A stretch of DNA of 63,394 nt from Paraphysomonas bandaiensis. Its lineage: Eukaryota > Protista > Chrysophyceae. Numbering within the stretch: position 1 is the first letter of the stretch; every line of letters begins with the position of its first letter. Below are positions 3,601 to 62,800 of this stretch, piece by piece. Location: assembly GCA_965644295.1 (NCBI GenBank), contig CBFFRP010000179.1, positions 1-63,394 of the forward strand, given 5' to 3'. A model generated the notes under the pieces. The model was given only the letters and a program-made list of their open reading frames with translations, had not been told where the DNA came from and did not search any database. The translations under genes were made by a program, and so were the position numbers.

Positions 3601-3945
3601 CTTCTTATCTTTTGCTTCATGAATAAATATAAATGACTCCTCATATTCTTGTGTACGTACACCTGACTGAGTGTTTAACTTATCAGTACGTTCCACTGCA
3701 TCATTTAATGCATCTGAGTTACGTGATTCTTCAGTAGATGCAATGACCCAATCATATGGGGTTGGACTTGTAATTGTCGCATATCCCAATTGAATTACAG
3801 TGAACACCATAAGGAATATTATGATCACAGTACATGAACACATACGTATAGGATGGTATGACATTTCTCGTGTAATACGATATATCCATCCATTATCATG
3901 TCCTTTTTCTTTATCATGCATTGTCTGATGACTGTCTTTACCCAT
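636..3945 (-). CDS. Dispatched/Patched-family (RND, sterol-sensing domain) multi-pass membrane protein, 3 exons
   Basis: ORFs 3214-3945, 2453-3112 and 636-2501 join in frame through GT-AG introns 3164-3222 and 2577-2623. Motifs GVGADNIFV, FNTSVTTAAAF and GFSVDYTVHLGH, with two TM bundles, are typical of the Dispatched family. Confidence 0.88.
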
Positions 3946-4799
3946 CCTGAAATCAGATTGTGATAATACCCCCTGGTTAAGTCACTAGAAGGATGACTTA
4001 ATGAGCTTGATATAATGCCAGTCATCTTGCATGGAAATACATAGTTAGACTCTCTACACACTCCTACATACATAAGACTCTATCGAATTCTATGAAGATT
4101 TAACCAATTATATAAATAGATAGATATTTACAATGATATGATTGGATAATTGGAAACGTAGGAGAGAAAGTGGAGAAAGTTCGTCAGTGGGTTGATGAAT
4201 GGATGATAACTTCAATGTAATCCGTTGAAAAAAGAACGGATATATGGCCGAATTAAACGGATATTGTTATTTATTTTCATGTAGCCCGTTAATTAAACGC
4301 ATCATATGTAGCCCGTGTATAATATGTTACGTGAAATATCAGGATATCTATTGTTGACCAATCATATAATAATACAATCTGTTGATTTGATAAATGTAAA
4401 AAACTGCCACACAACCGTTAATACAATCTATCATGCACATGCATTGCATCCAGTCTCCATGCAACTCCATTGGAATGCAAATAGATATATAAAAGATGCT
4501 CTTAGAAGAAATGCTTTGCAACTTAACTCATCTGCAAGTAATACTGCACCAATCAAATTCAAGAAACATCATCGTGTCTACTAACGGGTGACTGTATTGT
4601 TTTCGGACTGTTGGCACTGCTGTAAGAGGGAATACGTCATGGATGTCATGAGGCTGATAGTGGCTCACTTGTCAATTTATTTGTAAGCTAATGATGTGTA
4701 GCCTGTAATCAAAACCTTGTGTGATATGACGAGAAACACTCCCGTTAAAACATTTTGAGATGATCCTTCTGCGTGTACTGTGGATATAAACACTCTCTT

Positions 4800-5318
4800 A
4801 TCTTTTCAAGATTTGTGAGAATGATTTGTGAGAGCTGAATTAGAGCGACTTTTTACATTCTCAATACACACACACGAAGATCGCATGCGATACTGGGACA
4901 GTCTGCTCTACAGGAACTGTCATGTATTAAGTTGTCTTATACACTCCTATATCTCTGGATGATATAGCAGATGATTCAGAAAGGTTACTCTCGCAATCAG
5001 TTCTTATAGATGCGTTTTAGGATTGGGAAGACGATGACAATCTATGTCACGATGAGATAGAGAATTTTGATTGGGAAGAAAACGATTAATAATTACTACT
5101 GGATCCTGCTTAAGAAAGAAAACGCTACGGTGGTATTCACTTATGTGGTGGTATACTCCTTTCATCAACTAACTAATTCTACAATATGATCAACATTCAA
5201 AAGTTCATTTTTATAATAGTAATGTAATATAAAAATTATAATAGTATTTTTGGGCCGGTTTAAAATGTTCTTCAATACTATTGGCAATAGTATTGCACTA
5301 TGCTATTCCCTAGCCTTG
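4800..5318 (+). mobile_element. Degraded hAT (family A) 3' end remnant
   Basis: ERLF-like and acidic-tail coding remnants. 5240-5318 (GGCCGGTTTAAA...GTATTGCACTATGCTATTCCCTAGCC) resembles the 3' termini at 21480-21567 and 39260-39350. Confidence 0.5.
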
Positions 5319-5649
5319 TAAAAATATATTGTACAACACTCTTTCATCTTAATTGCGTTAAGCATTTGTTAACATCTTGTTAAAAAATTTCAGTCAGTGT
5401 TCAGCATCTAGCGTTATGACACTCAATATATATATATATATATATGCCTTCAACAAAGTTGGACTTGCATCTTTTTGTGGTGCTCTGGGGGATAAGTACC
5501 GGAGATATTTCTCAGGAAAACTACCGCGAGCCGCATATATAATCAGCATATATTGTTCTGTCCACTCATAGCCAAATGTTTATGTGGTACAAGGGACACC
5601 AAAATATAATTTTATTTTCTTGGAGTTTATTATCAAAATTATTTATTTA

Positions 5650-6198: not shown

Positions 6199-8095
6199 GT
6201 AGTAGTGAATGTCTGATTATTTAGCAATAGGCGTTGAGACCTTGCATCAATTAGTGGCTAGAAGAATGCTAGTCATACTAGTTAGACCACTACCCGTAAC
6301 TAATCAATACAAACTCTTTTATCCTACTATTTAACGCTACGAAAGCTGCTTGTGCGTCGCCGCAAGCACCAAGGTGCAACCACTTCCGTTCTTTTTGTGT
6401 GATATGAAATTCGCCTTTATCGTGTGTCCGTGGACTCACCGGCGCTTTTGATCTGGGGGTCTCCCTTTGGGATGGGTCTCCATTGGTTTTGGAGGGGGCT
6501 CAGCATTCTGAATTAGGGTCCTGAGTGCACCTAGTTCCAGATGTGTGGGTTGGGAGTGGTGGGGATTGTTGTGAGGAGGAGTTGGGTTTGTAGTATGTGT
6601 TACTGTGCTCCTGTGGGGCCGCGGGTGTAGATAGAGTTGTCGAAGCCGTCGGCGTTGTGGAGGTCTGGGCAGTCCAGTGCTCTGTCGGGTAGGACCTGTG
6701 AGGTGTGCACGTGTGTCTGGAGTCGGATACGCTGTGGGGGGTCTTCGTTGGACCCCTAGTAGTCGAAGGACTCTCGGACGTTGTCTTGACTGACTGCGTT
6801 TCGGACGGGGTCTCGGGAGTAGCCTGGGCGGCCTTTTGGACATGGTGATATAGCGACAACCGCGATCCTGTAACATAAGCTTCGCTGCAGTGTAAAGCGG
6901 TTGCAGGAGATTAATAACCACTGTTTCTAGGTTCCGTAGACTGTGAACCGTCAGGTGGTTGTGTATGTCATCTCCGAAGACCGTTTCCAGTTGGGCTGCT
7001 GTGATGGTTCCAGTCCAGTATCTCTCGACCTGTGGGATGGAGGGATTCCAGGCTCTGCTGGAGAGTCTCCGTAGTGCAGATGTGATCCAGTTGGGTAAGT
7101 TCTGAGTTCTCTGTATTTCGTGTAGCACATTTTTATGCGATTGAAATGCAGTTTCCCTTATTTGGGTGATGGATTCATGTGTGCAGTCGAGGCACATATG
7201 TTTTAGGGAATCTAGTCGAAACCCGCAGTCAGAGCATGCGGCTTTGGTCAGGTCAAGCCCCTGTTTGGTTTTGGCCCGGTTCCTCCCTATGCAGAAAGAT
7301 TTGTCCCATGTCAGTGCCGTGTTGAGAATTCTTTGGCGTAGATTTGAGCTGAGTTTGTCTTTGGATGCACTGCCATCCGCTTGAGCTAGTTTGCGCGGGA
7401 GGTGTACTCCGCTATTGGTCCAGTAGCCAGGCGCTCGATCAGGATTGTTTCCGTAGCGTTGATCTCTGGTTGAAGTGTAGTTCTCAAGTGTCCTTAGGTC
7501 GCAGAGATCTTGGAAATCAGTAAGGAGTGGGCTAGAGTAGTATGGCCGTCTTGTACTGTGCAAACGCCAGTGCCATAATCCAGCGGTTAGTAAGCGTTCA
7601 ATGGCACTGTCAATCGCAATTGTACAGACAGTGTAGTTATTTTTTCCAAGGATGCGATCGACTTCATGCCAGTCTTCACCCGCGACTGCGTCCGCAATAT
7701 AGATGCCCTTGTCCTCAAACGTCCACTCCGTTTCATCTGTGGTACGTCGTTCGGGATGGGACCTCACCCAGGTCACCTGTCGTTTGCAATCTCTACTGGC
7801 CGCGATGCTTTCGAGTAGTACCCCTTTTGCACGGTGACCGAGAGCTCTGCGTCTTGTGGAGAGTGCTTCCTCAGTACGGGTGCACACTGCCTGACAGTCT
7901 GTGTGGCTGCTTATGTGTTCGGGAATGCGTGTTGAGAGTATAAGCCCCATGGCTGTGCCTATGAGTTCATATGCGTATGAGTCCAAACCTGGCACATCAC
8001 GAAAGGGTGTATCTAGTCGTAGTATTATGGTTGTACCATCTTCCCAGGCATTTTCTGGGGGTAAGTAGACGACCGCTGCACCTCCTCGGTGTGTC
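6199..8095 (-). mobile_element. 5'-truncated non-LTR retrotransposon: RNase H + CCHC zinc finger + basic C-terminus + 3' UTR
   Basis: ORF 6436-7995 stays open up to ~8094. It has RNase H motifs (ELIG, HTDCQ, WVRSHPE...GIYIADAVA) and CSDC..HMCLDC. The 3' UTR ends in GACATTCACTACTAC and is repeated elsewhere in the window. Confidence 0.8.
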
Positions 8096-8099
8096 CATC

Positions 8100-8761: not shown

Positions 8762-11700
8762 CTACAGCTGAATAGCTGAAAACTTTTCGCTTGTTTCAGG
8801 AGACCTTTGCCGGTTGCGAATGTACTCTACAGGATAATGTATAAACATATGTAACAATAATAATATCAGTAGTAGCTATAGTTGCAAAACAGTGTAATAT
8901 TCAGCATTTTAGTTCTGAACTCACCAAGTGTGTTGCGGTAGTGGGCTTTCACAGCTGACCCCATCGGCTGGGCAGCTGCTCCCTGTCCTCCATCCTCGGA
9001 TCCCATCTGTTCGTTAATAAGGGCGATCAGGCCGCTCAAATATCGCACGTGGATAAGTGGGTTGTTGTTCTCGAAGTAAAATATGTATCTGAAGTAGAGC
9101 ACACCCGTCAGTATGTCACGTATAAACAAACCGATAGTACAAATGTAAGCAATGGACACGCAGAATGCAGAAGTATATATGAATAGTAAAAATACAAACC
9201 TGTCCAAGATCTCCACGAATATGTTGGGGTTACACACAGAGGCAATCTTAAGTGATCTTTGCATGCACTCCAGCACCCTGTCACAATCTGCATACCTCGC
9301 CCCATGCGTAGACGGCTCTTCTTCTCCATCAACAATTGTTGGTGGATCCTTGGGCCAAAACAAGTGGGAACAAAGGGTAACCATACGGCACTGATCGGGT
9401 TTCTTAAGGAGTTTGTTGGCATACTACACACATGAGGGAAATTTAAAAAATCAACGCTTAAAGCAAAAGCCAGATGCTGTAATCTCAAAGCTCACAATTG
9501 TGTGATAACAGCACAATGTGGGAAAAATTTCACATATACTGTTTCCATAATACCACTTCCTGTACCAACCTGTGCAGTTTTGGTGATTAGTGCCTCGTAG
9601 TCCTCGGTGGGGAAGTTGCGGCAGTTCAACAGGGTGCCAATAATAGCCGTCAAGGCACGAACTTGGGCCTTGCTCTCACTGATTTCACACTCATAGATAA
9701 GCAAACCCTCTTTCACAAACTCGTACGCAATAGCAGAGAAGTTGCATGCATCCGCCGCCTGGAGATCAACAAATTAATAGGCATATATGACAAGAGCAGG
9801 AACATGTGTCAGATGCATTCATATCGAATTGCTACGCAGTTAACAAGTAGCGTGCACGATTCCAACAAACATTACCTGTGCAGCTTGTAGGAAAAGTTTC
9901 ATTGATATTTCTGGATGAGAGGTTGCCATGGCGGTGACAATCTCAATGATAAATTGGAACACCTTTCGGGTGCTGTATTGCGGGGGAGCATCTTGCTCCA
10001 TTGAAGCCGCCTTTTCTCTTGCAAGCACGCGTTTAGCAAGTGATAATGCAGCGAACACCAGTGGAACAAGTGTAAACTGAATGCGTTGGGCACCGCCATT
10101 AATAAACTTCGTCCGCGCGGCGACAAAAATACGCAACAAGACATCTGTGTCGTCATTTTGCATTAAATGTACAACTTTCGCAACAAGCATTTGCTCCTCC
10201 TTAAACTGATCATCAATAGGAGGCTCTTTGCCATCCTCATCAGCTTCTCTAGTTGTGCCATCGGGATCCTTAAGAAGGGGTGTAATGATCTCAAACAGCT
10301 GTTCAGCCTGATCCACTTCAGTAAGGAGAGCATTACGAGCAACAACACTTCGCAGGAGTGAGGCTGCAACTTCCTTCCAATTACCCCATGGTAAGAAAGA
10401 CATGAGCGTAGGATACTGTTGCAGACTTAACACCTTTAGGGCGAGGGAGGATAACGGGGCTGAGAGAAGCTGCTCAATCTGCGCGGTGGTATCTCGCAAG
10501 GACTTCGTGGTGGGGTGTGCACCCTCGGCGGCCAAGGTCGCTTGGAAATCACTTTTCTCTATTAGTGCAACACTCGCTGCCAGACAGTGCGAAACATAAT
10601 CCAGCTTATTCGGGTAGCACTTCAAGGAGAAGTTTGTAAGGGCCGTCTGAAGCCGCAAGGTTTCAGTAAGAGTCAAATTAGTGCGGTTCTCGATAAGAGT
10701 TGTGATACAATCGTTGAACATCTTAAACGCATGAACCTCTGAAGGAATCTGACCAGTGTTATTAGCCGCATAGTATGCCAGGCGATCCATCATGGCCTCA
10801 AGTATCGCCCGGACGTTAACCTTGTCCTTCAAATTGGCGCACGTGTTCAAGAATGGCTCAAGAGTAGCAAGATGAAACTCATCAGGAAAAACCTGTATGG
10901 TGCAGTCCATCAGGTACGACTGGGCGATAGTGTCTTTGCACAACACAACTTGCTCCAGGATCTTAGGAAGAACGTTGGCGCGGTACTCCTGTAGATCAAG
11001 ACCCTCGAGTTCACTCAAACGGACAAGGTTAGTGCCGACAAGAATGCGCAGATCTTGACGCTCTTTCTCGCGCTTCTTGCGGTCCTCCTTGGCGCCCTGG
11101 TTCTGCAAACGTACCCAAAGGCGATTAGCCTGCTCAAAATTTTGGAGGACAAAATCGTAAGCATCTTGAACATTTCCACCAGTTCCTTCAAATGCGGAAC
11201 CTGTATCAGGGAGCCGCTTTTTAGTCACATGGCTGAGGTAATTGCGGAGAAATAGACCCCTCATTGGATGCTGTACTCCTTTGATCATATCAACCAAATC
11301 TTTCAGAATATCTTTTGCTGGGGCTTCTTGAGAGTCAATGTAGACACCACCCACACAACAGAGAAGGTAAAGACGTGGAAGTACTTGAGAGCACGCTTGA
11401 ACTTTCTCATAGATTTCTTGAATCTTATGCCCATTTCGTTGAAGAGTTAAGAAGTACTCTTCCATCTCTCTCATCTCATCAAGAACATTCATATAAAGTT
11501 CATAGTAGTTTTTTGGTGTGAGTTTACTAGTGCGAAGTTCTCTGAGCATTTCAGTGGCATGGTCTAATGCTAGTTTGACATTATCTCCATCCTATACCAT
11601 AAAATACAGATATTAACACCGCATACACTCAATATAACACACATCTATATATACATCTATATATATACATATATAACATACCAGACACATACATACACAC

Positions 11701-29230: not shown

Positions 29231-29418
29231 TGAATGTCTTTTTATTTAGCAATAGGCGTTAAAAACTCGTTCCGATATAGTGGCTAGTTTAATGCTAGAC
29301 CTACTAGTTAGCTAGTTAGACCTCTACCCGTAACTAATCAGCACGAATTCTATTATATCCTACTATATTTAGCGCTACAGAAGCTGCTTGTGCGTCGCCG
29401 CAAGCACCAAGGTGCAAA
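29231..29418 (-). mobile_element. LINE 3'-tail copy
   Basis: Strong similarity to 6205-6380 (TTAGCAATAGGCGTT...TACCCGTAACTAATCA...GCTGCTTGTGCGTCGCCGCAAGCACCAAGGTGCAA). Confidence 0.8.
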
Positions 29419-41210: not shown

Positions 41211-42907
41211 ATGCAAAAACTACTGTTTGCACTATTAACAGCATGGATCCTGTGCACCACACTCACTATCGCCGAGACTAATCTACGTCAGAGCCCATAT
41301 CATCGCCGTGCTAAAGGTAAAGGCGGCAAGGGAGGAAAGGGAGGAAAGGGAGGTAAAGGAGGCAAAGGGGGTAACAATGGGGGGTCAGATGATGATGAGA
41401 CAGCTGATTTTAATGAACTGAATGTCGTAAATAACTTTCCGCCAGATGCGTATGTGGTGGAAGATATCACTGAATTACCGCCTGCTCCTATAGAGCTGCA
41501 GTTGTCCGTTCCTACACCAGAGGATATTGACCCCTTTGAAAACATTGAAGATTCGTCATACATCATCGAGGCAGGAAGAGAATATTATGTTTACGCAATT
41601 GTTCCTCCTCCTGTAAGCACGACATCTGTTGCTGGGACTAACGACCACAGACCGTTACATCAGTGAATGGTATTGGCGTGGCTTTTGGAAACACGGATGA
41701 AAGCGTGGTAGTTACACCATTGGTGTCAAGCGGGGTTTCTAATTTGGGTACTTACAGTGACGGATCAACTCTATACCGCCTACAGATGTCAATTCCTTCG
41801 TCGACGTGCACAAGTAACAGTCACACGGGGTCAATAAATGGATGTTTTGCAATGGATTACAGTTTGTATTCTATAAGCGATAATGGCGAAGTCTCTGAAC
41901 CAGCCAAATCAACATCACATATTTCCTGTGGTAGTGTGTGCTCTGGAAACTCTGTTTGTGCTGTGGGGTGCCAGTCATGTGATGCCGGAGATCAAGTGTC
42001 CGGGTCTGATACCCCAGTATCTCGCAAATTTGATTTGGGTACTACCACTGGGTCATTTGAATTAATGTATGAAACATATGGCGTTCCAGATCGCGTAAAG
42101 GTGTGGAATGATGGTACACTGTTACATGATAGCGGGTGCTTGGGAACATATGGCGAATACAACTTCGATATTCAATTTAGCAGTTCTTCCTCTGAGGTTA
42201 GGGTAGATGTGGAGCCTCTTTGCACGTGCTCAACTGGTGGTCCTTGTTCTGGTACAGCGTGGTACTTTCATATTCAATGCCCTGAAATTGCGAGTCCACC
42301 AACACCCCAGCCAACTGAATCTTGCACTCTAGGCGAGCAATCTGGATGTTCGACATCTGTTGCGAGTGGGCTCACTGCTCAAATTATATCAAAATTGGAA
42401 ACCATGGGGTATGATTTCGAGGATCTAGATGACGAATGGGTGCACTGTACCGATCCTTGTGTGAACTCCCTTCAAGAGAAGGCAGCTAAATCACTTGTAA
42501 AAGCTGCTAAGTCCAAAGATGATTTCATTACTCTAACCTCCGCCTTCCGATCGTCGGCCCAACAGTACCTATTGTACGACTGGAGGAATCGTGGCTTATG
42601 TAACCTTGGATTGGTTGCAAAACCAGGCACTTCTAACCATGAGAGCGGAAGGGCTATCGACACGGCAAATTACAACTACTGGAAGGATACACTGACTGAC
42701 GATAAACGTGGTTGGTCTCACCCATTTCCCACTCGTGACCCCGTTCATTTTGAGTACACCACTGCCACTAATATCGCAAAAAATAACCTAATGGCATTCC
42801 AGAAATTATGGAACGAAAACAATCCTGACGATAAAATTATAGAGGACGGTTTATACGGCACTAATACGGAAAATGCCTTTTCTAAAGCCCCGTGCAATGG
42901 GTGGTAA
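41211..42907 (+). CDS. Secreted M15-family (VanY-like) Zn peptidase with C-terminal peptidoglycan-binding-like domain, 2 exons
   Basis: Signal peptide and GGK repeats. A 38-nt intron at 41613-41650 (GTAAGC..CTAAC..CAG) joins the two ORFs in frame. SAFRS..QQ, AKPGTSNHESGRAID and DPVHFEY are M15 motifs; AFQKLWN..IEDGLYGTNT is PG_binding_1-like. Confidence 0.85.
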
Positions 42908-46408: not shown

Positions 46409-48775
46409 TGTTGAGATCTGAAGATTCTATATACTTGCAATTGAGTGCAGTATTATGTGAGATGCAAGGATCGAAAGATATATATGTAATTTGTACATTA
46501 TATTATGTAGTATGAAACTGAAGTAGAAGTGGATGACTATACAGGATACGATCACTGAGTGGGTGGTTTGTACACTATAGTAGTAAATGAATGGTGTTGA
46601 ACACATCGAACACAACTTAGGTTCTTTATCATGTAATGTTTATAATTTCATCTTATCAGTTGAGAATAGTAAACCTTAGCAAATAATGTCAACTTCTGTT
46701 ATGGTAGCGAATGCTAGTTGTAGGGATGGGGAAGATGACAAGAAGCTACGGTTTGACAAGAACCAAGCAGACTATTCAGCGAGAAAAATCAAGATGCATC
46801 TAATGAAGAAAAACCGAAACCATCTTGGCTTGGAGGACCCGCCAGCCGGAGGAAGGAATTTAGAGTCATGGAGAGAGCGTAATGATACCTGTGTTAGTAC
46901 TATTTGGGAGGCTTGCGAGCATGACCCTGATGTGTTGGAGGTAGCCAATCAATATTTGGAGGGGAAGGCAATTTTACCTGCTGATGATCCTGCTAAGGAG
47001 GTGTTATCCAGTGAGCTCCTTCAGACACTGGTTGATAGGTTCAGAGGCGAGATTGGGACTGTATTGGAGAAGACTACGGCAGAATACCATTCGTTCAAAA
47101 TAAGGCCGGGGGAAAAGGTGTCTGTTGGGGTAGATCGACTGAACGGTATAATCCAGAAGCTCATAAAATTGGGACAACCGCAGACAGAGGCAAGTAAATT
47201 AGCAAAGATAAAAGCAGCGCTGCAGATAGAGGAATTACATGATTTATGGATGTCGGTAGCGATGATGCCTAAAGCAACAACTACATTTGATTCGGTGAAA
47301 GAGGCTTGTGAAGAGTATGACGAGGCTATGACGCAGCTGAAGAAACTAAAGGGAGACAAATCTGAAGAGATCAATTTTACGGCGTCGAAGGAGCCAGTGG
47401 TTTGTTCATTTTGTCGGAAGAAGGGACATGTAGCAGCGAATTGTTATGCTAAGGAACGACAAAGAAAAATGGATAAGTTCAAAAGAAAAGGGAAGACAAA
47501 GGAAAAGGCTTCGAAGAGTGTGCAGCAGCCAGGATCAAAGGATTATACTGGTTGTCATATCTGTGGAGATTTTAGTCATAAAGCCCGACAGTGCAAGTCG
47601 AAAAAACGGAAGAACATAAAAAACCCGGATAATGAGAATCCTCGAAAATCGAACAGGAAATTCGAGACAGAATGGAAGAAATACGTCAACGACGGAGAGT
47701 CGTCGGATGATGAAGCGAATATGTTTGGAGAAGAGGTTTTGCTATCGGTGGATACGTCGGAAGAACCTCGTGTATATCTGGACAGTTGTGCAAGTAAAAG
47801 ACTGTTTATAGTAAAGGATAAAATTGCACTGGAGTCATTTACTCCTGAGTTTGGGGCAATCCAACTAACTAGAAAGGGTTCTCAATTGGAGACACAGGGG
47901 GCTGGTACATTCGGGGAATGGAGAGACATCAGAGTTAGTGAAGAAGCGGTGAAGAACATTGTGTCAGGAGGGATGCTGAGATCAATGGGATACGGATTAC
48001 AACTGCTTCGAAAGCCTAAAATCGTGGAATTGGACTCTGGAAACGAGGTGTTGACTGGAGAGTACGATGAGCATGGAGGGATGCCGTATGTGGACTTGAT
48101 GGAGGTGTTAAATCTGCCAAATGTGTCTATGTGCAATCAGATGGAGGAGGTAAATTTGTCGGATAATACAGGACAAGATGCGTTGGATCGCTTACATGAG
48201 CGTACTGGACATGTCTCGAAATCGAAGTTATTAGAAGCTCACCGACACATGTTATTCAGAGGATCAGGACTACAACGACATCACCTTTCGAAGGCAAAGG
48301 AGAAGAGTTGCAAGAAACCCCTGTGTAAATGGTGTGCCAAGGCGAAGATAACCAGGCATTCGTTCAAATCACGGGACAACGAAGAGCTAAGCGCAGTCAG
48401 GTTTCTGGAACGAGTGACAGCGGACATCTCAGTCTACCTAAATTGTGAATCCAGACAAGGGTATAAGTACGTACTCCTATTTACGGACTTAGCAACAAAG
48501 ATGATATGGGAATATGGATTGAGGACTCGAAGCGGAGAGGAGGTGTTCAAATGTCTACGACACTTGTGCGAGGTCCACTTAGTGAAGTACGAGGGGTGGA
48601 ACCGTATAGTGGAGTATCATGCCGATGGAGGATCCGAACTTATTAGTCAGCAGATAAGAGAGTATCTGTTGCAGCGATATGGGACTCGGGTGTCACATAC
48701 AACACGAGACACGCCAGAGCTCAACGCGGTGTCTGAGAGGAAATTCCGAACAATTGGGGAGATGACACTGAAAGC
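46409..48775 (+). mobile_element. 3'-truncated Ty1/copia LTR retrotransposon (putative 5' LTR ~46409-46616; gag-protease-integrase ORF 46686-48833)
   Basis: Two CCHC knuckles, protease YLDSCAS, GAG-pre-integrase LHERTGH..CKWC and integrase D..D..E (TADI, HADGGSE, NAVSERK) in copia order. Begins TGTTG; RT and RNase H are missing. Confidence 0.9.
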
Positions 48776-49331
48776 AAACTATTTTCAAACTTGGGAAAAA
48801 TTTTTCCCAAATATTTTCATTAATGATTTCTAGTTGACTATACATATTTTAAGATGAAAAAAGGATATACAACAGCTTGGATGTTGATAAAAGTAAGGTA
48901 ATATTATCAAGCTGTTTTTCCGTCAACTCTTTCAGTAACTCATACCGTAGCGTTGTTTTCCATAATACAAATGAACTGAAATACACACCCTGTATCTTTA
49001 TTACTTACATTGAGAGAAATGTAAACTTATAACTAAAAAAACTGCTTAAAAGACACAAGATATGACCTGAGGGTCACTAGTTCAGTGGATATTTCCAGGG
49101 AATTATTATTCATTGCAGTCAATTTTAGTTATGAACCTAGTCGCAAATTGTACTTACATATAACTTCTAAATTAATTAAATAAATGGTGTCCCACACAGC
49201 AGTAAAGTGAAAATTTTATTTTTGACCAGGTGAATACCATAAACACCTAGTCAACCCAGTCATTGAAAACTGAAAATATGAATTAGTAAATGAATATGTT
49301 TTTCAACCACTTGGTTAGGTGTTTATGTCAC

Positions 49332-54654: not shown

Positions 54655-55230
54655 ATGTTAGTGACTGCTGCTGTGCTCCTCGCTGCTCAACTGGTGCAGG
54701 GCGCTTCCCCGCATGGAGCCCTGCAAGCCCAGTCTGCAGGCGATGCCTTAACTGAGATGCGCTCAAGTCAAACCAAGGCTCTCAAGGCCGTCCTGGAGAA
54801 TCACATTCACCAGAGCCTTGCCAATGCACAGACTGCGGCTAAGAAGACCAGTGAAATGGCGGAAGATGCTGTGTTGACTCGTAAGCTGGCATCCTATGGC
54901 ACGGGATACTTGATTGCCAAGTATCACGCCACGAGTGCATGTGACGTGTCTCCAGAAGAATATGGTGAGTGTGATATAGAATGCTCCCTATGGACATTAT
55001 GTCACGGGTTGTACTTATGTAGGTATTCATCTGGGAACCTGTTACTCCTACGGTAGTGGTGTCTCTGTATCATACACTTGCAGTGTGGACGACTCCACCG
55101 GCACAGTAACACTGACAGAACATGACTGGACCACCTCAGATGACTGCACAGGAGCTGAAACCACCGATAGTCGTACACATACGGGCTGTGCTCTTCTCGA
55201 TGACGACGATTACTATTACTATTACGATGA
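54655..55230 (+). pseudogene. 5' part of a secreted Cys-containing protein gene, interrupted by insertions
   Basis: Signal peptide MLVTAAVLLAAQLVQG; intron ~54965-55022 (GTGAGT..GTAG); exon 2 IHLGTCYSYG..DDCTGAE ends near the insertion at 55231. Confidence 0.55.
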
Positions 55231-55352
55231 TGTCACGCATACCTGTAGTTACTGTTATACGTGGAGTTATACGGTGTTATACTGCGGTACTCTAAGTAGC
55301 ATGCTGTTGTACTTTCATTTTCAGTTTATTTAGTATACATTGTGGGGTCACA

Positions 55353-58300
55353 CGCCCTTTCACTCCGATTTGCTGAACAACTGGGTTAGATATGATGAAA
55401 CCCAAACCATTGCTGCCTCCCCACAGGGAAACTTTTTAAAAGAAATATATGCACACATGCTATCCCCTGCCTGTTTAGACATATGGGAAGGATTCATAGC
55501 CAAGGCTTCCAGGACGGACAACTATGATCTCATGATATCATTCACGCTACCAGAGCACAAATTGGACACCACGCACAGCGCCCTACTAGTTGCCCAGCAT
55601 CTCGCGAATGGCAACAAACCCTGGGCAGACTCCACTCATGTTGTATCTAGGCATGTGCGGACCCTTTGCCTGACAAAGGGTATTCCCTCAACAGCCACTG
55701 TTAGTCTCCGTAAGACACTCATGCAATATGAATCCTCGACTCCACACACAGGACTACATCTAGACACGGAGGATTTCCAACTGCTACTCGATCTTCTCTC
55801 CATACCATACAGACTATGGGACGCTGTTCAACCGCACCTGGCGCCTGGTTGGGCACAGCTGTCACCATTCTCCAGACAGGCACTAACAGTGCACGCTTCT
55901 ACCAACACTGTGGTAACCCATGACATCATACGCAGCCAGCATGGGTTTCACATACTCAATGCAACAAATATCCCCACCTGCATCATGCACGCTCTAACAC
56001 GGACTCAGGAGCGGCTATCCTGTTTTCTGCAACACCAGACCTCCAGACAGAGCACCAACATCATCTGGACTTCTGAGCCGTCAACTGTACCATCTATGCT
56101 ACATGAGCACAGAGAGCAACAGGAACAGAGGGAAGTAATTGCAGTCTCCTTGTCACCGAGAGCTCGACGTCAACTACGACAGATGAACCCCACGGACCGT
56201 CGACAACTCCGGCTCCATATGTGCGACATGAGCAGAGTCTATCGCCTCACCCTCAGACCCTCAGCCCTTCGCACACAACAACATATCCCTAGTGATGGGT
56301 ACTGCGCATACAGTACACTCTATCATCTGCACATTCTTGCTTCAAGCAGGCGACACACTCGCTCCTGTCTGAAATTAGACCTCAAACAACGCAAGGACCG
56401 TCACACGCTAGCATCTTTCATAAATACATTAGGCACCCAAGCGTTCGACACAATGCAACGGGAGTACATGGCCCATCACACACTTCAGCCACTACGACAT
56501 AAGTTAGATCACGCACAGGCCGCACTTTTAATACCTGCCAAAACAACATACACTACGGAGGACGACATAACTCACTGGCTCTCAGTGCGAGAGGTCCACC
56601 TTTTAGCCTCTACTATCAACCCCTGCACGACGTGGGCGCAAAATGGTAATTACCTCAGCATTGTAGGCATCCCTACTGACAAAGTAGCTTATAACATCGC
56701 ATGGAAGGTGGACGAACTTAGGAACGCTATTCGTGATAACTACTACCATGTCATACTACAAGATGCTCACTACTTCCTCTTAGACCCTGCCGGTCTTTCT
56801 ACTGCCCTAGACAACGCCCTACTATCTCTTGAAAACACCTTGGCCACCAGTATACTCTCAACGGCTGACCCCATCGCTCCACCTACACTTCCCGCAGACT
56901 CAATCACGAACAACAATAGGACATCAAAGATGACCAGCACCAGAACAACCTCGTCAAGCAGCACCAAGTTAGCACGAACAAATCGACAGATTCTGCAGGC
57001 TTCAACCCCTGGAGCACTACCATCGCACAAGAAGATGCAGTTGAAACACGCCCAAACTGCGTTGACAAGTCGATGCCAGCCAACCCGGAAAGCCAAAAAG
57101 GTCGTAAATTACGATGAAAGTGACCAACCAACGAACCTTCACAACTCACACCCAACCACGACCACACGAACGATCAGACCAACTCCAGCACTAGATACCA
57201 CCGGCTGGGACAGGGACTGGTCAAGAAAGTTCTACATTGCGTACGCCGATAACACTGCCAAAGGACTATCCCTTTATGCGAAGAACACATTCCCAGCAGA
57301 CGTCATCATTGCTGAGTACAAAGGCAAACGCTATCCACTAACAAAGCTGAGTCAGTCTACAAGGCGTTCTGATTACATAGTTCAAGACAGTACTGGTACC
57401 TTCGCAATAGATGGCTTTGACCAAGTCCGACAATGTGTAACATGCGAAGCTGGGTATATTAATGACCCCCTAGCCACAAACATGGCTAATGTCAAGTTTG
57501 TCACGAAAAATAAACGCCTCTATGTCCGTACAATACGTCCCATTGCTAAGGATGAAGAACTTCTCATCAACTACGGGCATCATTATTGGTGTGATCAACG
57601 CTGGCCACTTGAGATATTAATCCAAGCCAGGGCTGCGTACGACAGCGACATAGGCGGTGCCAATATAGCAGTATGGGACAGACTCCTTGCAGACAAGAGT
57701 GGAACTCCTACAGAGACCTCCAGCAGCATCCCCAAGGATCCCTCGGGAGCAGCCATGGGACTCCGACTCTCCACATGGAACACAAATGGCAATCCGGCAT
57801 CTCACACAGGCAAAGCCCAAGCTATCATCCGACACTTTAAGCGGCAAAAATTGGACGTGCTCCTATTACAGGATGTCCGTCTAACAGAAACTCAGGCCAA
57901 CTTCTTCACGCGTATCATAGAAGATGCAATCCAGGGATCAAGAATATGCCTCTTCCTCAGCAAGCAGCCAAAACTGACTTCAAGAGACCCACTAATGGGG
58001 GGTACAGTAGTCATAATCAGCGAATACTGGAAGCGCCGTCTCGCCTTCACAAAGGCTGACTTTACGGGACTTGGTTTAGTGAGCCGACTAGAGTTCAAAA
58101 CGTCGGTGGCGCACACCCTAGTACTAATAAGCGTCTATCTACCCCCGAAGCCATCCACGCCAGGCTCTTGCACATTATGGAGTAAATTGACCAAGCTAGG
58201 GAGAGCGTCCCGTGGCATCTGTACTGCTGACCCCTACAAGCTCCTATGCAACATCCTAATGAAATGGGTCACTAAAGCCAGAGCCAAGGACCATACTGTC

Positions 58301-59413
58301 ATTGTCGCCGGCGACTTCAATGGCTCCATGGAGACAAATCCTAAAGGCAGAGACATACGACCACTTGCCGACAAACTCCAACTGGCTGCACCACTCCATG
58401 AGCTTCTCCTACCCAGGAAAACATATCATACCTTCCACAGATTAGACAAAGGAATATCGCGGATCGATCATATTCTACACACGCCGTTACCTCCGAACAT
58501 GTCTGTTACGGACACTGGCTGCCTTGACTCCCCCTCATTACTCGCAGCAGCCTTCGATCATCGACCGGTCTGGGTCGGTTTCACCGTACCAGTCAATCTT
58601 GACCCTCGACCACCTGAGTCGCACCTCCGAATCCCCCCCCGTCTCACAATGTAAACCCGAAGGACTCCAAGGAAGTACAGGCATACACCGCAAGACTCCT
58701 CCAACTTCATGCACAACTACCACATTTAGACAACGGGTCGACTGCCATACTCCCTCCTGAGGTGGCAGCCAACAGACTAGCGGCCATCCATCACATAACC
58801 CTCCAGGCTTCGCTTGAAGCGAAGCGTCCTGCATGTACACATAGCACACGCCTACACGAACGTTGTCAGCGCACACGCTCAAAGTTCAAGAATGGCTTTT
58901 CCCCGGAAATGAGAGTAATACAGGAAGGAATGCTCATGGTTTTGCGGATTATCCAAAAAATGTTCAATTCTGCCGGATACAAACGGCATGGATGGCGCGG
59001 CCCCCCGGCAACCACCCCCACCCACGAAATCATCACTGCATGGTTCGCCCGATGGGACTCCTATCTCAGGAGTTCTCAGGGTCACATCAAAGGCATATCA
59101 GACATCAACTTCTGGTGCAGCCACCGCAACGCGGACCCACGAGTAATCCTGGGTTGGAACGCAAAGCAAGCCACCAAGAAAAACCTCCTCCGAATTGCCT
59201 TGCGACTGAGAGGACTTCTTCATGGAAGAGCCAGGACAGAAATGCGGACTAGACTCACGGCTCGCACCAATCAGATGGAGGCACTGCTACAGCAGAAAAG
59301 ACTTCAAGCAATTCTTCAGAAAATTGGTCTCAAGGTCAAAACACCACTCCGACTTACCACGGTGAAAACAACTGACGGACACATCCTCACAACACCGCAA
59401 GACATTCATGAAG
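55353..59413 (+). mobile_element. Non-LTR retrotransposon ORF fragment: OTU-like + SET + APE endonuclease + pre-RT linker
   Basis: OTU: IPSDGYCAY..WL..HYF. SET: KGLSLYA..EYKG..GYIND..EELLINYGHHYW. APE: TWNTNG, LLLQDV, GGTVVI, SVYLPP, AGDFNG, SRIDHI, DHRPV. One frameshift at the C8 run near 58633-58640; interrupted by an LTR at 59414. Confidence 0.88.
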
Positions 59414-59875
59414 TGTAGTTGTTCTTTAGAACAACGTGTGCTCAAGCAAAAACAACACTGATCTATAACGTTTTAAAAAGATTTTAAGTGCACGCCAGCG
59501 GGCTGCTACACTGTTAAGCTCACCAGCGGGTGATGCTCCTCAACTCAGACGCAAACCGCGAAAGAATTTAAATAAATCGTTATTTAAAACGTGTAATAGA
59601 AAAGTGAGTAACACTGCTATACAACTCTACAGTAACACACACATACAACATCATGTTCAGCATTTCACTTCAGCACACAACACACCAGATCAGAAGTATT
59701 TTATCCGGTACGTATGTACAGCTTCAACACTCCGTGTATACACTGAAAGAGTAGAAACTGAATATGTAACTGAAAACTGAAAATACAAAAACACTCTGTA
59801 CGTGTTAGAGAGTACAACAGAAGAGTAACATATAATACTACTACCAACGCAGAAAATAACCAGTACTGCGTTACA
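59414..59875 (-). mobile_element. 3' LTR (462 bp, TGTA...TACA) of an LTR retrotransposon inserted into the LINE
   Basis: On the minus strand a polypurine tract GGGGGGAAAGAGGGTAG (59876-59892) directly precedes TGTAACGC; the segment ends ...AACTACA exactly where the LINE ORF stops. Confidence 0.75.
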
Positions 59876-62800
59876 CTACCCTCTTTCCCCCCAGCTGGAG
59901 AAATTAGATTGTGAATACAGACTGTGATTCATGTATGCAAATACTTAAATCAGCCATATTAGATAGCGTCATTCTAAGTATAAACAAACAAAATCAGATT
60001 TAAACAGAAATTGAGAATAAACTAGATAGACAAGGTAGTATTATAATAGAAATAAAAAAAATATTGAGAATATTATCATATAATATAATAGAAGAATAAA
60101 ACCTGTTTACAAGAGTATATCAGGAAAACTCTTGCAAAACTCCGCATCGACAAGCACCATAGTAGATTGATGAACACGTCTTAGTCCGGTTGAACTCCAT
60201 CAATCTGCTGTTTCCGCATTCGTAGTCGTTGTTCTTTAGCAAGAAAAACTTAACATGACAGTAACGACATCCTCGAATCGATGACAGATTGCACTCATTT
60301 AAATAGCATACCGCAGTAAAAGTAAACGATACTAAATTCTCAAATACGGACATTTGGATTAACTTTTGCCTTATATTGTATCCAATAACCAAATGAGAAA
60401 TTCGTAGAATAGTTGATTAAGTAAGTAACTCCCACATTTCAATGAAATTAGAAACATGCATCCGATCATCATAAACTTCACGCAACACCAACTGTAAGAA
60501 ATGTGCTTCAACTACTCGAATACTTGTTCAATTCACACAATGTTTTGACACAATCGAATATCCACGTTGAAATAGTAATGAGAAAAGAACACACTAGTAT
60601 TCATCGAGATATAAGCAATTTACCACCATCAACGTATTGAGATACTCCGAGTCATAACAATAATATCACCAAGAAAATATATTTCACCATGATGAATTGT
60701 CCATCGTCAATCAATTACAGAGTAAACTTTAGAAGTACAAAGTAACTCCGTTAAGAACTCATTGCGACAACATATTAATTTCATGAGAACGAATCAAGTC
60801 AAAAGACAGACTCCCTTTCGAAATATAGATACTTCCCACTGTGTATGTAAAACCAAAGAGACACTTTCATCAACTCATTGACCCTCGTAACGACATTTCA
60901 AACATCTTATTCGCACTAACCAGAACCAGATTTTAGAAATGAATAACATTTGGGTAACATAAGACGATCAAATATGATTTATTTCACCTTGGCAACTCGA
61001 CTAGTTAATCTTCACGTATATGGAAATTTTCCCATTGAAATACAAATAACTTGAGAATAACTCAGACCACATGGAATATCTAAGTTGAAAGTTCAAAATT
61101 TCCAAGATACAGATCAAAAAATTGTAAACCAGAACACAATTACATAACCAGGAATACAAGTATAAAGTGAATCAAAGGAACAATAACCTTAGAAAGAAGC
61201 TGGACAAATATCCACCGAATACTCGTAGCAACGAACGTAATTGAACAATAATACAGTCAAGTTTTAACCTTGTTGTAACCAGACAACATATGTCACAGCA
61301 ACGCTATATAACTCTCATTTCACTCATCATAAATATTGAACCGAGTTCACAAAATAACTTGATAACTCTCTTATTCCGAATGCAAATCCATAATATCAAC
61401 AACCAGAACTACACAAACTCCATACCACACACTTAATTCATCTTCCTGAATTTAATATGAGCTCATCAACTTTCGGAAATTCAACCCAAACTTTAACTCT
61501 GACAACATTCTGACACTAAACCTTCACAAGTTGAAAGTAAACTCAAAATGCTCTCAAAACATTACAAAAGTTCACTCAAACAACACCATAATATGTTGAT
61601 TCAGGCACTTGGACTCAACATTGTTGGCACATTTGTTGTAACTTGAATGTAAAACTGTGTATCAAGATCAGCAATTACTCCTCACTATAGAAGCACCAAT
61701 AATACTTTTCATCTTTATAATCACACACTTCCTTAATTCCATAATATTGAACCTCAAACCTCAAATTTCAAACATGAACAACAAGTTCACACATTCCGAA
61801 TGTCAAACAATCTGATACAGTTTATTTGAACAATTGAACATGTTCCACTTTTAGAATACCGAGAATACTTCAAACCTCTCAAATATTCTTAAAGAATAAT
61901 TGCACCATACGATTGCCTCAAATTTCTTGTATCACCATTGGAATAAGACACACATAACTGAAACTTTTAAGTGTCATATAACCAAATTTGTATAACAAGA
62001 TACAAAAGAAATCAACCATCATCATACCAATTTCTGTCTGAGTCTAGAAAACTCAACTTTGACAAGTCATGAATTCGTATGATAAAATCAATTCATCCTC
62101 ACCGTTTAGAACGAAAACATTTGATTCCATTGTATAGATTTAACCCATACATTACCAGAATATTTCGATCTCAATATCAATGAATAATCATCAACACCAT
62201 AATAAACCAAAACTTATAGCAAGAATCATTTAATCTTTCACATAATCACTGATGAAATAAGCTCTGACAAGAATAATAGTAGTATAATCTGAAAGTTTAT
62301 GAAAACATTCGAAATAACACTCCATAATTGCAACTTGATATCCATCTCAGGAAAACTCTTGTCAAACTTAATACTCATTTGATCCATGTAAATATCACCA
62401 AATCAATCAATAACTACCCATAGAATTCAAACACGTCACTACATAAAACAACTTTTAACCCACGTAAGCATTTTGAACACTGCTACTCGTAATACAAGAC
62501 ATCAGACTCAAGAACTCAAAACTCTTCTCCAAATTAAATACCAATCCATTCCGTCTGAATATATATACTACGATAGTACACTGGTCTTATATTAGTAACC
62601 ATAGGTTAGTAACAATTTTCCTCAAAATAACACTAGAATATTATTGAAGATATTGCCATTCCATTGAAAACAATTCATTTGGAACCATTCCATCCATTTG
62701 AATTAGAGATGACACTTTGGTCAAACACTAAGTTAAATCTCAACAAGGCTTCTCAATTATTGAATCTCAGGGATGATCGATAGAATTTCTCCGATTAACC

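Follow-up and report, generated by a model that had tools for sequence, protein, structure and literature searches.

A LINE retrotransposon of Paraphysomonas bandaiensis carrying SET and OTU-like domains

Introduction

Can a retrotransposon encode, in the same protein as its integration machinery, domains that might act on host chromatin and ubiquitin? This question is raised by a locus on contig CBFFRP010000179.1 of Paraphysomonas bandaiensis (assembly GCA_965644295.1), analysed here over a stretch of 63,394 nucleotides (hereafter, the window). From the sequence alone, an original prediction had proposed that one open frame combines an OTU-like domain, a Ser/Thr linker, a compact SET domain resembling the chlorovirus vSET enzymes and an apurinic/apyrimidinic-type endonuclease (APE), followed by a LINE-like pre-RT linker. 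We asked whether this arrangement is real, whether it belongs to a mobile element, whether it is maintained by selection and what it may do.

Results

The locus is an internal fragment of a multi-copy LINE

The predicted domain arrangement proved to be present. An open frame of 1104 aa runs from 55340 to 58654 on the forward strand, and Pfam places in it a SET domain (PF00856) at aa 642-746 (nt 57263-57577; E 3.8e-9, above the gathering score) and an Exo_endo_phos domain (PF03372) at aa 812-1049 (nt 57773-58486; E 7.4e-10). However, blastn showed that positions 55344-59413 (+) correspond to positions 1499-5566 of a 9.4-kb full copy on contig C440 of this genome, used here as the reference, with 98.4% identity. 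The locus is therefore truncated at both the 5' and 3' ends and has no RT of its own, which the original prediction had missed. Loose ends of metagenome contigs continue into element sequence on both sides.

The copy also carries a private 2-bp insertion at 58645-58646, which shifts the frame and creates the stop at 58652-58654, so that the window reads IPPRLTM* where intact copies read IPPRLNVNPKD. These two bases are absent from the other copies, from the contigs of three of the four sequencing runs compared (X15, X16 and X3) and from part of those of the fourth (X1). The APE-RT linker then continues in another frame (NVNPKDSKEVQAYTARLL...) from 58647 to 59413, where the alignment to the full copy ends before the RT domain and AT-rich unrelated DNA follows.

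We found at least 45 matches to the element in the genome, most of them 97-99% identical, a multiplicity that had likewise gone unnoticed. A second, separate fragment lies at 6200-8099 on the reverse strand of the window; it comprises the last 1.9 kb of the element (the end of the ORF plus the 3' UTR, ending ...CATTCACTACTA, with no poly-A), is 99.8% identical to the reference and represents a typical 5'-truncated LINE insertion. Full copies are about 9.4 kb or longer and carry a single ORF, of 2788-2819 aa in the three copies listed and about 2,930 aa as estimated for copies that keep the start of the first OTU-like unit. The intact ORFs fall into two subfamilies only 55-65% identical in protein, and in both of them SET, APE and RT (PF00078, E 9e-15 and 1e-14) lie in the one ORF.

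Several further features identify the element as an APE-type LINE. The reference copy is flanked by a 13-bp target-site duplication (TAGTAATTCATAA), at least 12 copies start at the same base next to unrelated flanks, and the dispersed copies have no LTR or TIR. The RT region matches human L1 ORF2p, its best solved match, at 1e-8, and R2 more weakly. On the other hand, several copies are also 3'-truncated, which is atypical. We also considered a Helentron or Helitron, but Pfam finds only SET, APE and RVT_1 in the 2,800-aa ORF, with no Rep/helicase protein, and the element has an RT and a target-site duplication.

Domain order of the element

In full copies the order is three tandem OTU-like units, an S/T/K-rich linker, SET, APE, RT, an RNase H-like D-E-D-H-D motif set and a Cys/His (zinc) knuckle, the RNase H assignment being supported by motifs only. 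The fragment in the window begins within this series. OTU-like unit 2, a degenerate unit that the original prediction had overlooked, lies at 55353-56005. In this subfamily its catalytic-Cys position is occupied by His (TTHSALL, 55571-55591), while the helix motif DTEDFQLLLDLL and QHGFHIL (55937-55957) are kept. Unit 3, at 56234-56833, is the OTU-like domain originally predicted. It carries the Cys motif IPSDGYCAYS (SDGYCAY at 56291-56311, Cys codon 56303-56305), HWLSVREVHLLAST and the His motif DAHYFLL (56762-56782, His codon 56768-56770), and these motifs are present in all 30 copies sampled.

A low-complexity Ser/Thr/Lys-rich linker follows at 56834-57205, including the basic patch RCQPTRKAKK at 57071-57100; it is poorly conserved between subfamilies, although environmental relatives have an equivalent basic or Pro-rich linker before SET. 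The SET domain with its family-specific C-terminal extension spans 57206-57619 and shows the motifs KGLSLYA (GxG-like), RRSDYIV, GYINDPL (YINDPL at 57455-57472), EELLINYGHHYW (57554-57589) and RWPLEIL, without pre- or post-SET Cys clusters. The APE domain, at 57758-58585, is complete, with the motifs STWNTNG, GDFNGS, SRIDHIL and FDHRPVW, and is collinear with the environmental SET-APE proteins P0008 and P0005.

The SET domain is genuine but departs from canonical motifs

A profile built from eight LINE-linked SETs matched KMT2C at 4.5e-12, EZH2 at 1e-10 and SETD7 at 3e-10, in agreement with the Pfam hit. The catalytic Tyr of the EELxxxY motif (EELLINYG here) is invariant across eight lineages and aligns with EELTYDY of KMT2C/D. 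In contrast, the canonical N-H of the cofactor-binding motif (RFINHSCxPN) is not kept: the Asn is retained but the His is Asp or Glu in all lineages. Moreover, the second Gly of GxG is Ser in this genome (G-L-S), while GxG is canonical in the relatives. Catalysis is therefore not assured.

The proposed likeness to chlorovirus vSET (PBCV-1 A612L) is not supported by sequence. Both are minimal SET domains without pre- or post-SET Cys clusters, are encoded by a genetic parasite and have a similar C-terminal YGxxYW. However, vSET is not among the best 60 of 147 solved SET chains for the LINE SET profile, and in a quick tree the one virus-linked SET, that of contig L041, falls in the other half. 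The LINE SET further differs by its N-D in place of N-H and by the RWPL extension.

The OTU assignment of the Cys/His units is only weakly supported

No unit, including those of the relatives, matched any Pfam model at E values up to 10, and PHROG searches gave no hit. PDB searches with phmmer and hmmsearch returned nothing significant, the weak hits including nairovirus OTU at E 2.4. Both AlphaFold2 models are unusable (pLDDT 42); Foldseek searches with them gave hits at E about 1, non-significant, with the OTU deubiquitinases Ceg23 and OTUB2 at ranks 1-3 for the unit-1 model and nairovirus OTUs lower. Pairwise similarity between the units of one protein is not significant either, and about 90 residues separate the Cys from the helix in units 1 and 3, longer than expected for an OTU domain.

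What remains is the conservation of motifs and the language-model neighbours. The three units align on P-x-[DE]G-x-C, an LL-x-x-L helix, W and H-[YF]-F, the order found in OTU proteases of viruses and giant viruses (the nairovirus L-protein OTU and Nucleocytoviricota OTU proteins). Units 1 and 3 read EGFCG...NDHFF and SDGYC...DAHYF, respectively, and unit 2 keeps the Cys in subfamily C and in the environmental contig L042 (NCBI PBSN01000010.1) but has His in subfamilies A and B. Unit 1 cross-hits unit 2 of L042 and of a further contig, L038, at 5e-5 and 3e-6. Three separate language-model queries, unit 3 among them, returned PF02338 (OTU) clusters as nearest neighbours (0.93 with 180-186 of 256 shared features, 0.91 and 0.89), consisting of proteins of Nucleocytoviricota and haptophytes.

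One might therefore argue that the N-terminal ~900 aa are not proteases at all, but a diverged structural or RNA-binding region standing in for ORF1, with coincidental Cys/His motifs. The failure of every profile search and the low-confidence models would fit this view, as would the loss of the unit 2 Cys in subfamilies A and B and the absence of the first half of unit 1 in subfamily A copies, given that both subfamilies are young and abundant. Nevertheless, we consider it unlikely, since the same motif order and spacing recur in three units and in lineages under 30% identical, including the textbook PPDGLCGW...NDHYH of the environmental protein P0119, and since the predicted secondary-structure order fits OTU, with the Cys at a helix start and the His on a beta hairpin. 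The language-model neighbours, and the OTU deubiquitinases that top the Foldseek list even for a poor model, also speak against it.

The accessory domains are under selection and shared with marine relatives

Whether SET occurs only in this copy, and whether catalytic residues are conserved among copies, had been set beforehand as tests of the prediction. Between subfamilies B and C, dN is 0.21 for unit 1, 0.24 for unit 3 and 0.22 for SET, close to the values for APE (0.18) and RT (0.16), while spacers run at 0.54-0.63 (0.63 for the linker before SET) and synonymous sites are saturated. Unit 2 is less constrained (0.37). The motifs are intact in 28-30 of 30 copies.

Relatives were found in marine metagenome contigs, one of them filed in NCBI as a Nitrospiraceae MAG, which share SET followed by APE, or OTU-like followed by SET, at 25-49% identity; the finding also flags mislabelled eukaryotic LINE contigs inside bacterial MAGs. 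The environmental proteins P0008, P0005, P0024, P0121 and P0113 carry SET followed by APE at 25-32% identity, L042 carries unit 2, unit 3, SET, APE and RT at 27-49% identity, and in P0119 the canonical Cys/His unit is followed by SET.

These data contradict a chance capture, in which a host SET or OTU gene fragment would have been picked up by one element lineage and carried along without function. LINEs can transduce flanking sequence, and the window copy alone could not exclude this. However, SET is present in all subfamilies with dN as low as in APE, the SET-then-APE order occurs in at least five environmental lineages at 25-37% identity, and the shared RWPL extension occurs only on that side of the SET tree. 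The fusion is therefore old, and we regard chance capture as very unlikely.

Contigs of a poly-A metatranscriptome cover parts of the element, while the unique flank at 54800-55141 has none. Such contigs can come from contaminating DNA, and they derive from other copies, not from this fragment.

Discussion

Taken together, our analysis establishes that the locus is a dead internal fragment of a recently active, dispersed, APE-type non-LTR retrotransposon in an ochrophyte stramenopile close to chrysophytes, and that its accessory module is ancestral to a clade that also lives in other marine protists and is under purifying selection; what the module does, including methylation, ubiquitin removal, anti-silencing and targeting, is inferred. 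The interpretation given in the original prediction is thus partly supported: the LINE identity and the SET domain as a conserved part of the endonuclease polyprotein hold, the OTU assignment is weak, the vSET likeness is unsupported and the proposed functions remain inference.

The nearest known elements are APE-type LINEs with RNase H (the I/Tad1/Jockey-like group), the nearest named proteins being Rhizophagus irregularis 'jockey-like' APE-RT-RNase H ORFs, which the RT region matches at about 1e-14. APE preceding RT, the target-site duplication and the 5'-truncated copies are shared with these elements, and the 3' UTR is conserved between subfamilies as in 'stringent' LINEs. The element differs by its single ORF of about 2,800-2,900 aa without ORF1, by the absence of a poly-A tail and by about 1,100 aa of extra N-terminal domains (three Cys/His units plus SET) that none of the named relatives carries. 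No paper describing a LINE with SET was found in the literature we could search, where the only SET borne by a transposable element was that of the Proto-Helentron of Phytophthora infestans (Thomas et al. 2014, PMC4067079), another stramenopile. Helentrons also carry OTU-like cysteine proteases and an APE endonuclease. The Proto-Helentron is a rolling-circle DNA transposon with Rep/helicase, and SET and OTU are separate ORFs there, regarded as captured genes. In the LINE they are fused in frame to APE-RT.

We favor, with moderate confidence, a model in which the polyprotein would bind its own RNA through the 3' UTR, nick chromosomal DNA with APE and copy the RNA in place by target-primed reverse transcription. 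In this view, the SET domain most likely acts as a SAM-dependent lysine methyltransferase on a nucleosome or host chromatin protein at or near the integration site, and could make chromatin permissive for insertion or set the chromatin state of the new copy. The Cys/His units (1 and 3 intact, unit 2 having lost its Cys in this subfamily) most likely act as a papain-like protease or deubiquitinase, which could trim ubiquitin from chromatin or from the element's own protein and possibly cut the polyprotein. Substrate, activity and processing site are all hypothetical here.

Alternatively, the SET domain may be catalytically silent and serve as a histone-tail or nucleosome-binding tether that steers the RNP to particular chromatin, reading a mark and not writing one, as the chromodomain does for chromoviral integrases. 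The altered NH and GxG motifs are consistent with this possibility, as is the additional Pfam match to the PR-domain model PRDM2_PR (E 7e-5), since several members of that branch are weak or inactive enzymes. Furthermore, an environmental Ty3/gypsy-type Pol (P0110) carries a related SET exactly where chromoviruses carry a chromodomain. However, the Tyr of EELxxxY, the SDY motif and the aromatic YGxxYW end are invariant across lineages that share only ~30% identity, which fits a kept active site better than a mere binding surface, and the insertion flanks of 12 copies show no obvious common target. We therefore consider this alternative less likely, though it cannot be excluded.

It is also conceivable, but in our opinion doubtful, that the Cys/His units work only as cis-acting polyprotein proteases, as in tymovirus PRO or arterivirus PLP2, releasing the N-terminal part and SET from APE-RT with no role in host ubiquitin. 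The size of the ORF, its long disordered linkers and the absence of a separate ORF1 would be compatible with this, and viral OTU-type proteases often do both jobs. The one conserved LxGG-like site outside catalytic cores, AITLGG followed by E, lies between RT and the RNase H-like region, and a 33%-identical relative has NIAVGG there, but the site is lost in more distant relatives. Moreover, no conserved LxGG-type site lies in the inter-domain linkers, nor any conserved GG/GA/GS site in those flanking the OTU-like units or SET, and three tandem units, one of them decayed, are more than one cis-cleavage needs.

More tentatively, a clade of marine-protist LINEs may bring its own chromatin writer and ubiquitin eraser to the insertion site. 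SET would methylate a histone or a host silencing or repair factor, and the OTU-like units would remove ubiquitin, for example from histones or from the element's own protein, together letting the element open or mark chromatin during target-primed reverse transcription, or escape silencing and degradation. The related SETs on an LTR-retrotransposon Pol, on a viral contig and on oomycete Helentrons would then point to a shared, mobile toolkit of parasite-borne SETs.

Retrotransposons read chromatin through domains of host type that interact with histone marks at integration, such as the chromodomain on the integrase of chromoviruses (Ty3/gypsy elements) and the PHD finger in some CR1/L2 ORF1 proteins. 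Those domains are readers, belong to a different element class and sit in a different position in the protein, whereas SET is the fold of a writer; we found no report of a retrotransposon that carries the fold of a histone-mark writer fused to its integration machinery. The family is young, with intact copies, is widespread in marine metagenomes and its sequence occurs in poly-A metatranscriptome assemblies, so that it is accessible to experiment. If the SET and the Cys/His units are active, this family would give a direct handle on how a mobile element manipulates host chromatin and ubiquitin during insertion, and would also be a compact natural fusion of a methyltransferase, a nickase and a reverse transcriptase.

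The window carries an internal fragment of the element

In the window, an open frame of 1104 aa runs from 55340 to 58654 on the + strand. Pfam finds a SET domain at aa 642-746 (E 3.8e-9) and an Exo_endo_phos (APE) domain at aa 812-1049 (E 7.4e-10), but no OTU family. The motifs named in the original prediction lie where it had placed them, with SDGYCAY at 56291-56311, DAHYFLL at 56762-56782, YINDPL at 57455-57472 and EELLINYGHHYW at 57554-57589. The frame breaks at 58645 because of a 2-bp insertion, which is absent from the other copies and from the contigs of three of the four runs compared (X15, X16 and X3), and the APE-RT linker then continues in another frame up to 59413, where similarity to the element stops. 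The predicted observation is therefore confirmed. However, this copy is an internal fragment equal to positions 1499-5566 of a reference copy, truncated at both its 5' and 3' ends and lacking an RT.

The DNA on both sides of the fragment (55142-55342 and 59417-59900) is itself high-copy, with very high summed contig depth in the source run, and is present in poly-A RNA contigs. The LINE piece sits inside a nest of other repeats. A second fragment of the family, corresponding to its last 1.9 kb, lies at 6200-8099 on the minus strand. In addition, a 187-bp stretch at 29231-29417 (-) is 82% identical to the last part of the element's 3' UTR only, and may be the tail of a related family or of a short element that borrows the same 3' end. 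Three other ORFs were found in the window: one at 41663-42904 (+) with a VanY-type D-Ala-D-Ala carboxypeptidase domain, which is odd in a eukaryotic nuclear contig, one at 46686-48830 (+) with an integrase core, belonging to another mobile element, and an intron-less Vps35 gene at 9840-11546 (-). The host's Vps35 is 85% identical to an MMETSP transcript and 64-65% identical to the first hits whose source names a chrysophyte-type stramenopile, Chromulina and Ochromonadaceae.

The fragment belongs to a dispersed, multi-copy family

A search of the window's own 62.5-Mb assembly gave at least 45 matches, most of them 97-99% identical and several lying in long open frames. Three full copies were read, leaving out further copies of subfamily C and the 76-78% relatives. 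Their ORFs are 2801 aa (contig C440, subfamily A), 2819 aa (contig C433, subfamily B) and 2788 aa (contig C143, subfamily C). Pfam finds SET, APE and RVT_1 in the same order in A and in C, whose proteins are 65% identical. The C440 copy is flanked by a 13-bp duplication (TAGTAATTCATAA) and ends ...CATTCACTACTA without poly-A, while exact-match probes for target-site duplications on the C433 and C143 copies gave none. At least twelve copies begin at the same base (AATTCTCTGCC...) next to unrelated, mostly AT-rich flanks. The family is dispersed and shows no obvious site preference.

Subfamilies A and B differ only in the first ~870 bp, a 5'-end swap, and the 3' UTR is ~80% conserved between A/B and C. 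The 5' region of subfamily A has a 42-bp tandem repeat (G000:C440 reverse strand, element positions ~660-760, C440rc 746-847) that encodes the repeated peptide MSMYLSTCTVGHIT. Many copies (the loci L013, L014, L017, L027 and L028, and the window copy at 59413) are cut off at the 3' side, between element positions ~3800 and ~5800, and are followed by unrelated DNA. This is unusual for LINEs, which are normally 5'-truncated.

The N-terminal region consists of three repeated Cys/His units

B-type copies that keep the whole 5' part (locus L002) start with a first unit, TPMEGFCGLAAIA ... EQWGYTDIIALLAETLSIRIRIW ... NDHFFLD, followed by a second and a third unit, the latter being the OTU-like domain of the original prediction. 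MAFFT aligned all units on the same pattern: P-x-[DE]G-x-C, an L-R-x-x-L stretch, W, an LL-x-x-L helix followed by x-R-x-W, and H-[YF]-F-L. Within one protein the units are not significantly similar, and a first hhalign comparison of the unit alignments found only an overlap artefact. Across lineages they are similar, since unit 1 of this genome hits unit 2 of two environmental relatives at 5e-5 and 3e-6.

Unit 2 has His at the Cys position in subfamilies A and B, the window included (TTHSALL), whereas it keeps Cys in subfamily C (GSTCSAL) and in the environmental relative L042 (GRGFCSV). Subfamily A copies also lack the first half of unit 1. In the spacer between units 1 and 2, the short acidic motif SSD(N/D)SGDGP (L002:~1200-1260 and equivalents; L042:~740-800) is conserved in subfamilies A, B and C, in the protein P0006 and in L042, where it occurs twice, although the spacer around it is not conserved.

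Indirect evidence points to an OTU-type fold

Sequence profiles did not support an assignment of the Cys/His units. Searches of Pfam, PHROG and PDB with single units, with whole N-terminal regions, with the units of relatives and with two unit profiles (A4 and A10) gave no significant hit, and a word-index search with the unit profile found only the element's own family. AlphaFold2 models of unit 3 and unit 1, both built on shallow alignments, came back at pLDDT 42.

What supports OTU is indirect. The order and spacing of the motifs are conserved, and an environmental protein, P0119, shows a textbook version (PPDGLCGW ... NDHYH). In language-model comparisons, the nearest named clusters were PF02338 OTU proteins of Nucleocytoviricota and haptophytes for three mutually very divergent queries: unit 1 scored 0.93, sharing 180-186 of 256 features, with 80 of 100 hits being OTU, unit 3 scored 0.91 and P0119 scored 0.89. 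Foldseek on the two poor models gave nothing below E 0.7; with the unit-1 model, two chains of the Legionella OTU deubiquitinase Ceg23 and OTUB2 took ranks 1-3, with more OTUs further down, but at E about 1, and we regard these entries as weak hints only. A unit profile also gave weak PDB hits to nairovirus OTU (E 2.4), and the predicted secondary structure puts the Cys at a helix start and the His on a beta hairpin. Considering the above, we believe that an OTU-type papain-like fold is likely, although we do not count these units as tested members of the family.

The SET domain resembles vSET in architecture only

A profile of eight LINE-linked SETs clearly hits solved SET enzymes, namely KMT2C (4.5e-12), EZH2 (1e-10) and SETD7 (3e-10), and also PRDM12 and LegAS4. 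Across lineages at ~30% identity several positions are kept: SDY, the Asn of the NH motif, the Tyr of EELxxxY, and a family-specific end, YGxxYW followed by RW-x-L. On the other hand, the His of NH is Asp or Glu everywhere, and the GxG is G-L-S in this genome but canonical in the relatives.

The original prediction had likened this SET to the minimal chlorovirus vSET enzymes. However, vSET is not among the best 60 solved matches. In a quick tree, for which the careful search was unfinished and many forks are weak, all LINE-linked SETs fall in one half, while the SET of a viral-type contig and that of an LTR-element Pol fall in the other. The proposed resemblance to vSET is therefore architectural only.

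The viral-type contig is L041 (Ga0180433_10040082), in which a 182-aa SET ORF lies directly upstream of an AEP/D5-like primase-helicase ORF (L041:1195-4343). Among environmental proteins, P0110 (1195 aa) is a Ty3/gypsy-type Pol (RVT_1, RT_RNaseH, Integrase_H2C2, rve) that ends in a SET domain related to the LINE's, sitting where chromoviruses carry a chromodomain. A metagenome scan for more relatives found one locus, a viral-type SET and not a LINE, and a scan of a collection of genome contigs returned only bacterial SET proteins of Chitinophagia.

The domains are under stronger constraint than the spacers

Between subfamilies B and C synonymous sites are saturated (pS about 0.7), and we therefore report dN alone instead of dN/dS ratios. 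Amino-acid divergence is low in the domains and high in the spacers: dN is 0.21 for unit 1, 0.37 for unit 2, 0.24 for unit 3, 0.22 for SET, 0.18 for APE, 0.16 for RT and 0.14 for the RNase H-like region, against 0.54-0.63 for spacers and linkers. The motifs are present in 28-30 of 30 sampled copies, where the copy reaches that far.

The C-terminal part of the ORF

The best solved match of the RT region is human L1 ORF2p (1e-8), and the nearest named proteins are Rhizophagus 'jockey-like' APE-RT-RNase H ORFs. After RT, five lineages share invariant D, E, D, H and D positions in the order of RNase H. No profile confirms this, as we found no Pfam hit, no match to the Rhizophagus RNase H domain and no PDB profile hit, and the RNase H-like region is thus retained only as a motif pattern. 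A CSDCG...HMCLDC knuckle follows.

A search for conserved cleavage sites in the linkers found none. The only conserved LxGG-like site outside catalytic cores is AITLGG followed by E, between RT and the RNase H-like region (aa 2147-2155 of the protein of locus L034). A 33%-identical relative has NIAVGG there and more distant ones lack it. Its reading as a protease site is speculative.

Relatives occur in marine metagenomes

A full scan of 1.84 billion representative proteins with the N-terminal 1104 aa found only 114 hits, of which a few are fragments of the Cys/His units at 46-54% identity and the rest are SET domains. Several relatives share the architecture. The proteins P0008, P0005, P0021/P0121, P0024 and P0113 continue from SET into APE, collinear with this element, at 25-32% identity. 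Locus L040 continues into the RT, and L044 is a 71%-identical relative. L042 (NCBI GCA_002726235.1, contig PBSN01000010.1) carries unit 2, unit 3, SET, APE and RT at 27-49% identity, with frameshifts; although filed under a Nitrospiraceae MAG with its proteins annotated as hypothetical, it is a eukaryotic LINE of this clade and a mis-binned contig. P0119 has one canonical Cys/His unit followed by SET. The environmental proteins P0002 / P0115 represent an in-frame internal-deletion derivative of this LINE, in which about 300 N-terminal residues, up to the SSDNSGDGPSKS motif, are joined to the last ~35 residues, and which may be a non-autonomous derivative.

Near-identical DNA of the window fragment occurs in marine metagenomes of 15 studies. 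Contigs of a poly-A metatranscriptome also cover parts of it, while the unique flank has none, which fits transcription but does not prove it.

Discussion

In the full-text literature searched, which did not extend to Repbase, we found no LINE or other retrotransposon described with a SET domain. The nearest precedent is the proto-Helentron of Phytophthora infestans, which carries a SET ORF in a DNA transposon family that also bears OTU proteases and an APE domain (PMC4067079).

The interpretation put forward in the original prediction is only partly supported. The window's own copy is dead. While our analysis shows the domain architecture itself, its maintenance by selection and its age, the functions proposed for SET (methylation) and for the Cys/His units (deubiquitination or proteolysis) are inferred. 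Altogether, these findings identify a real, selected and old domain architecture, with a SET domain and Cys/His units that are probably of the OTU type, in an otherwise ordinary APE-type LINE.
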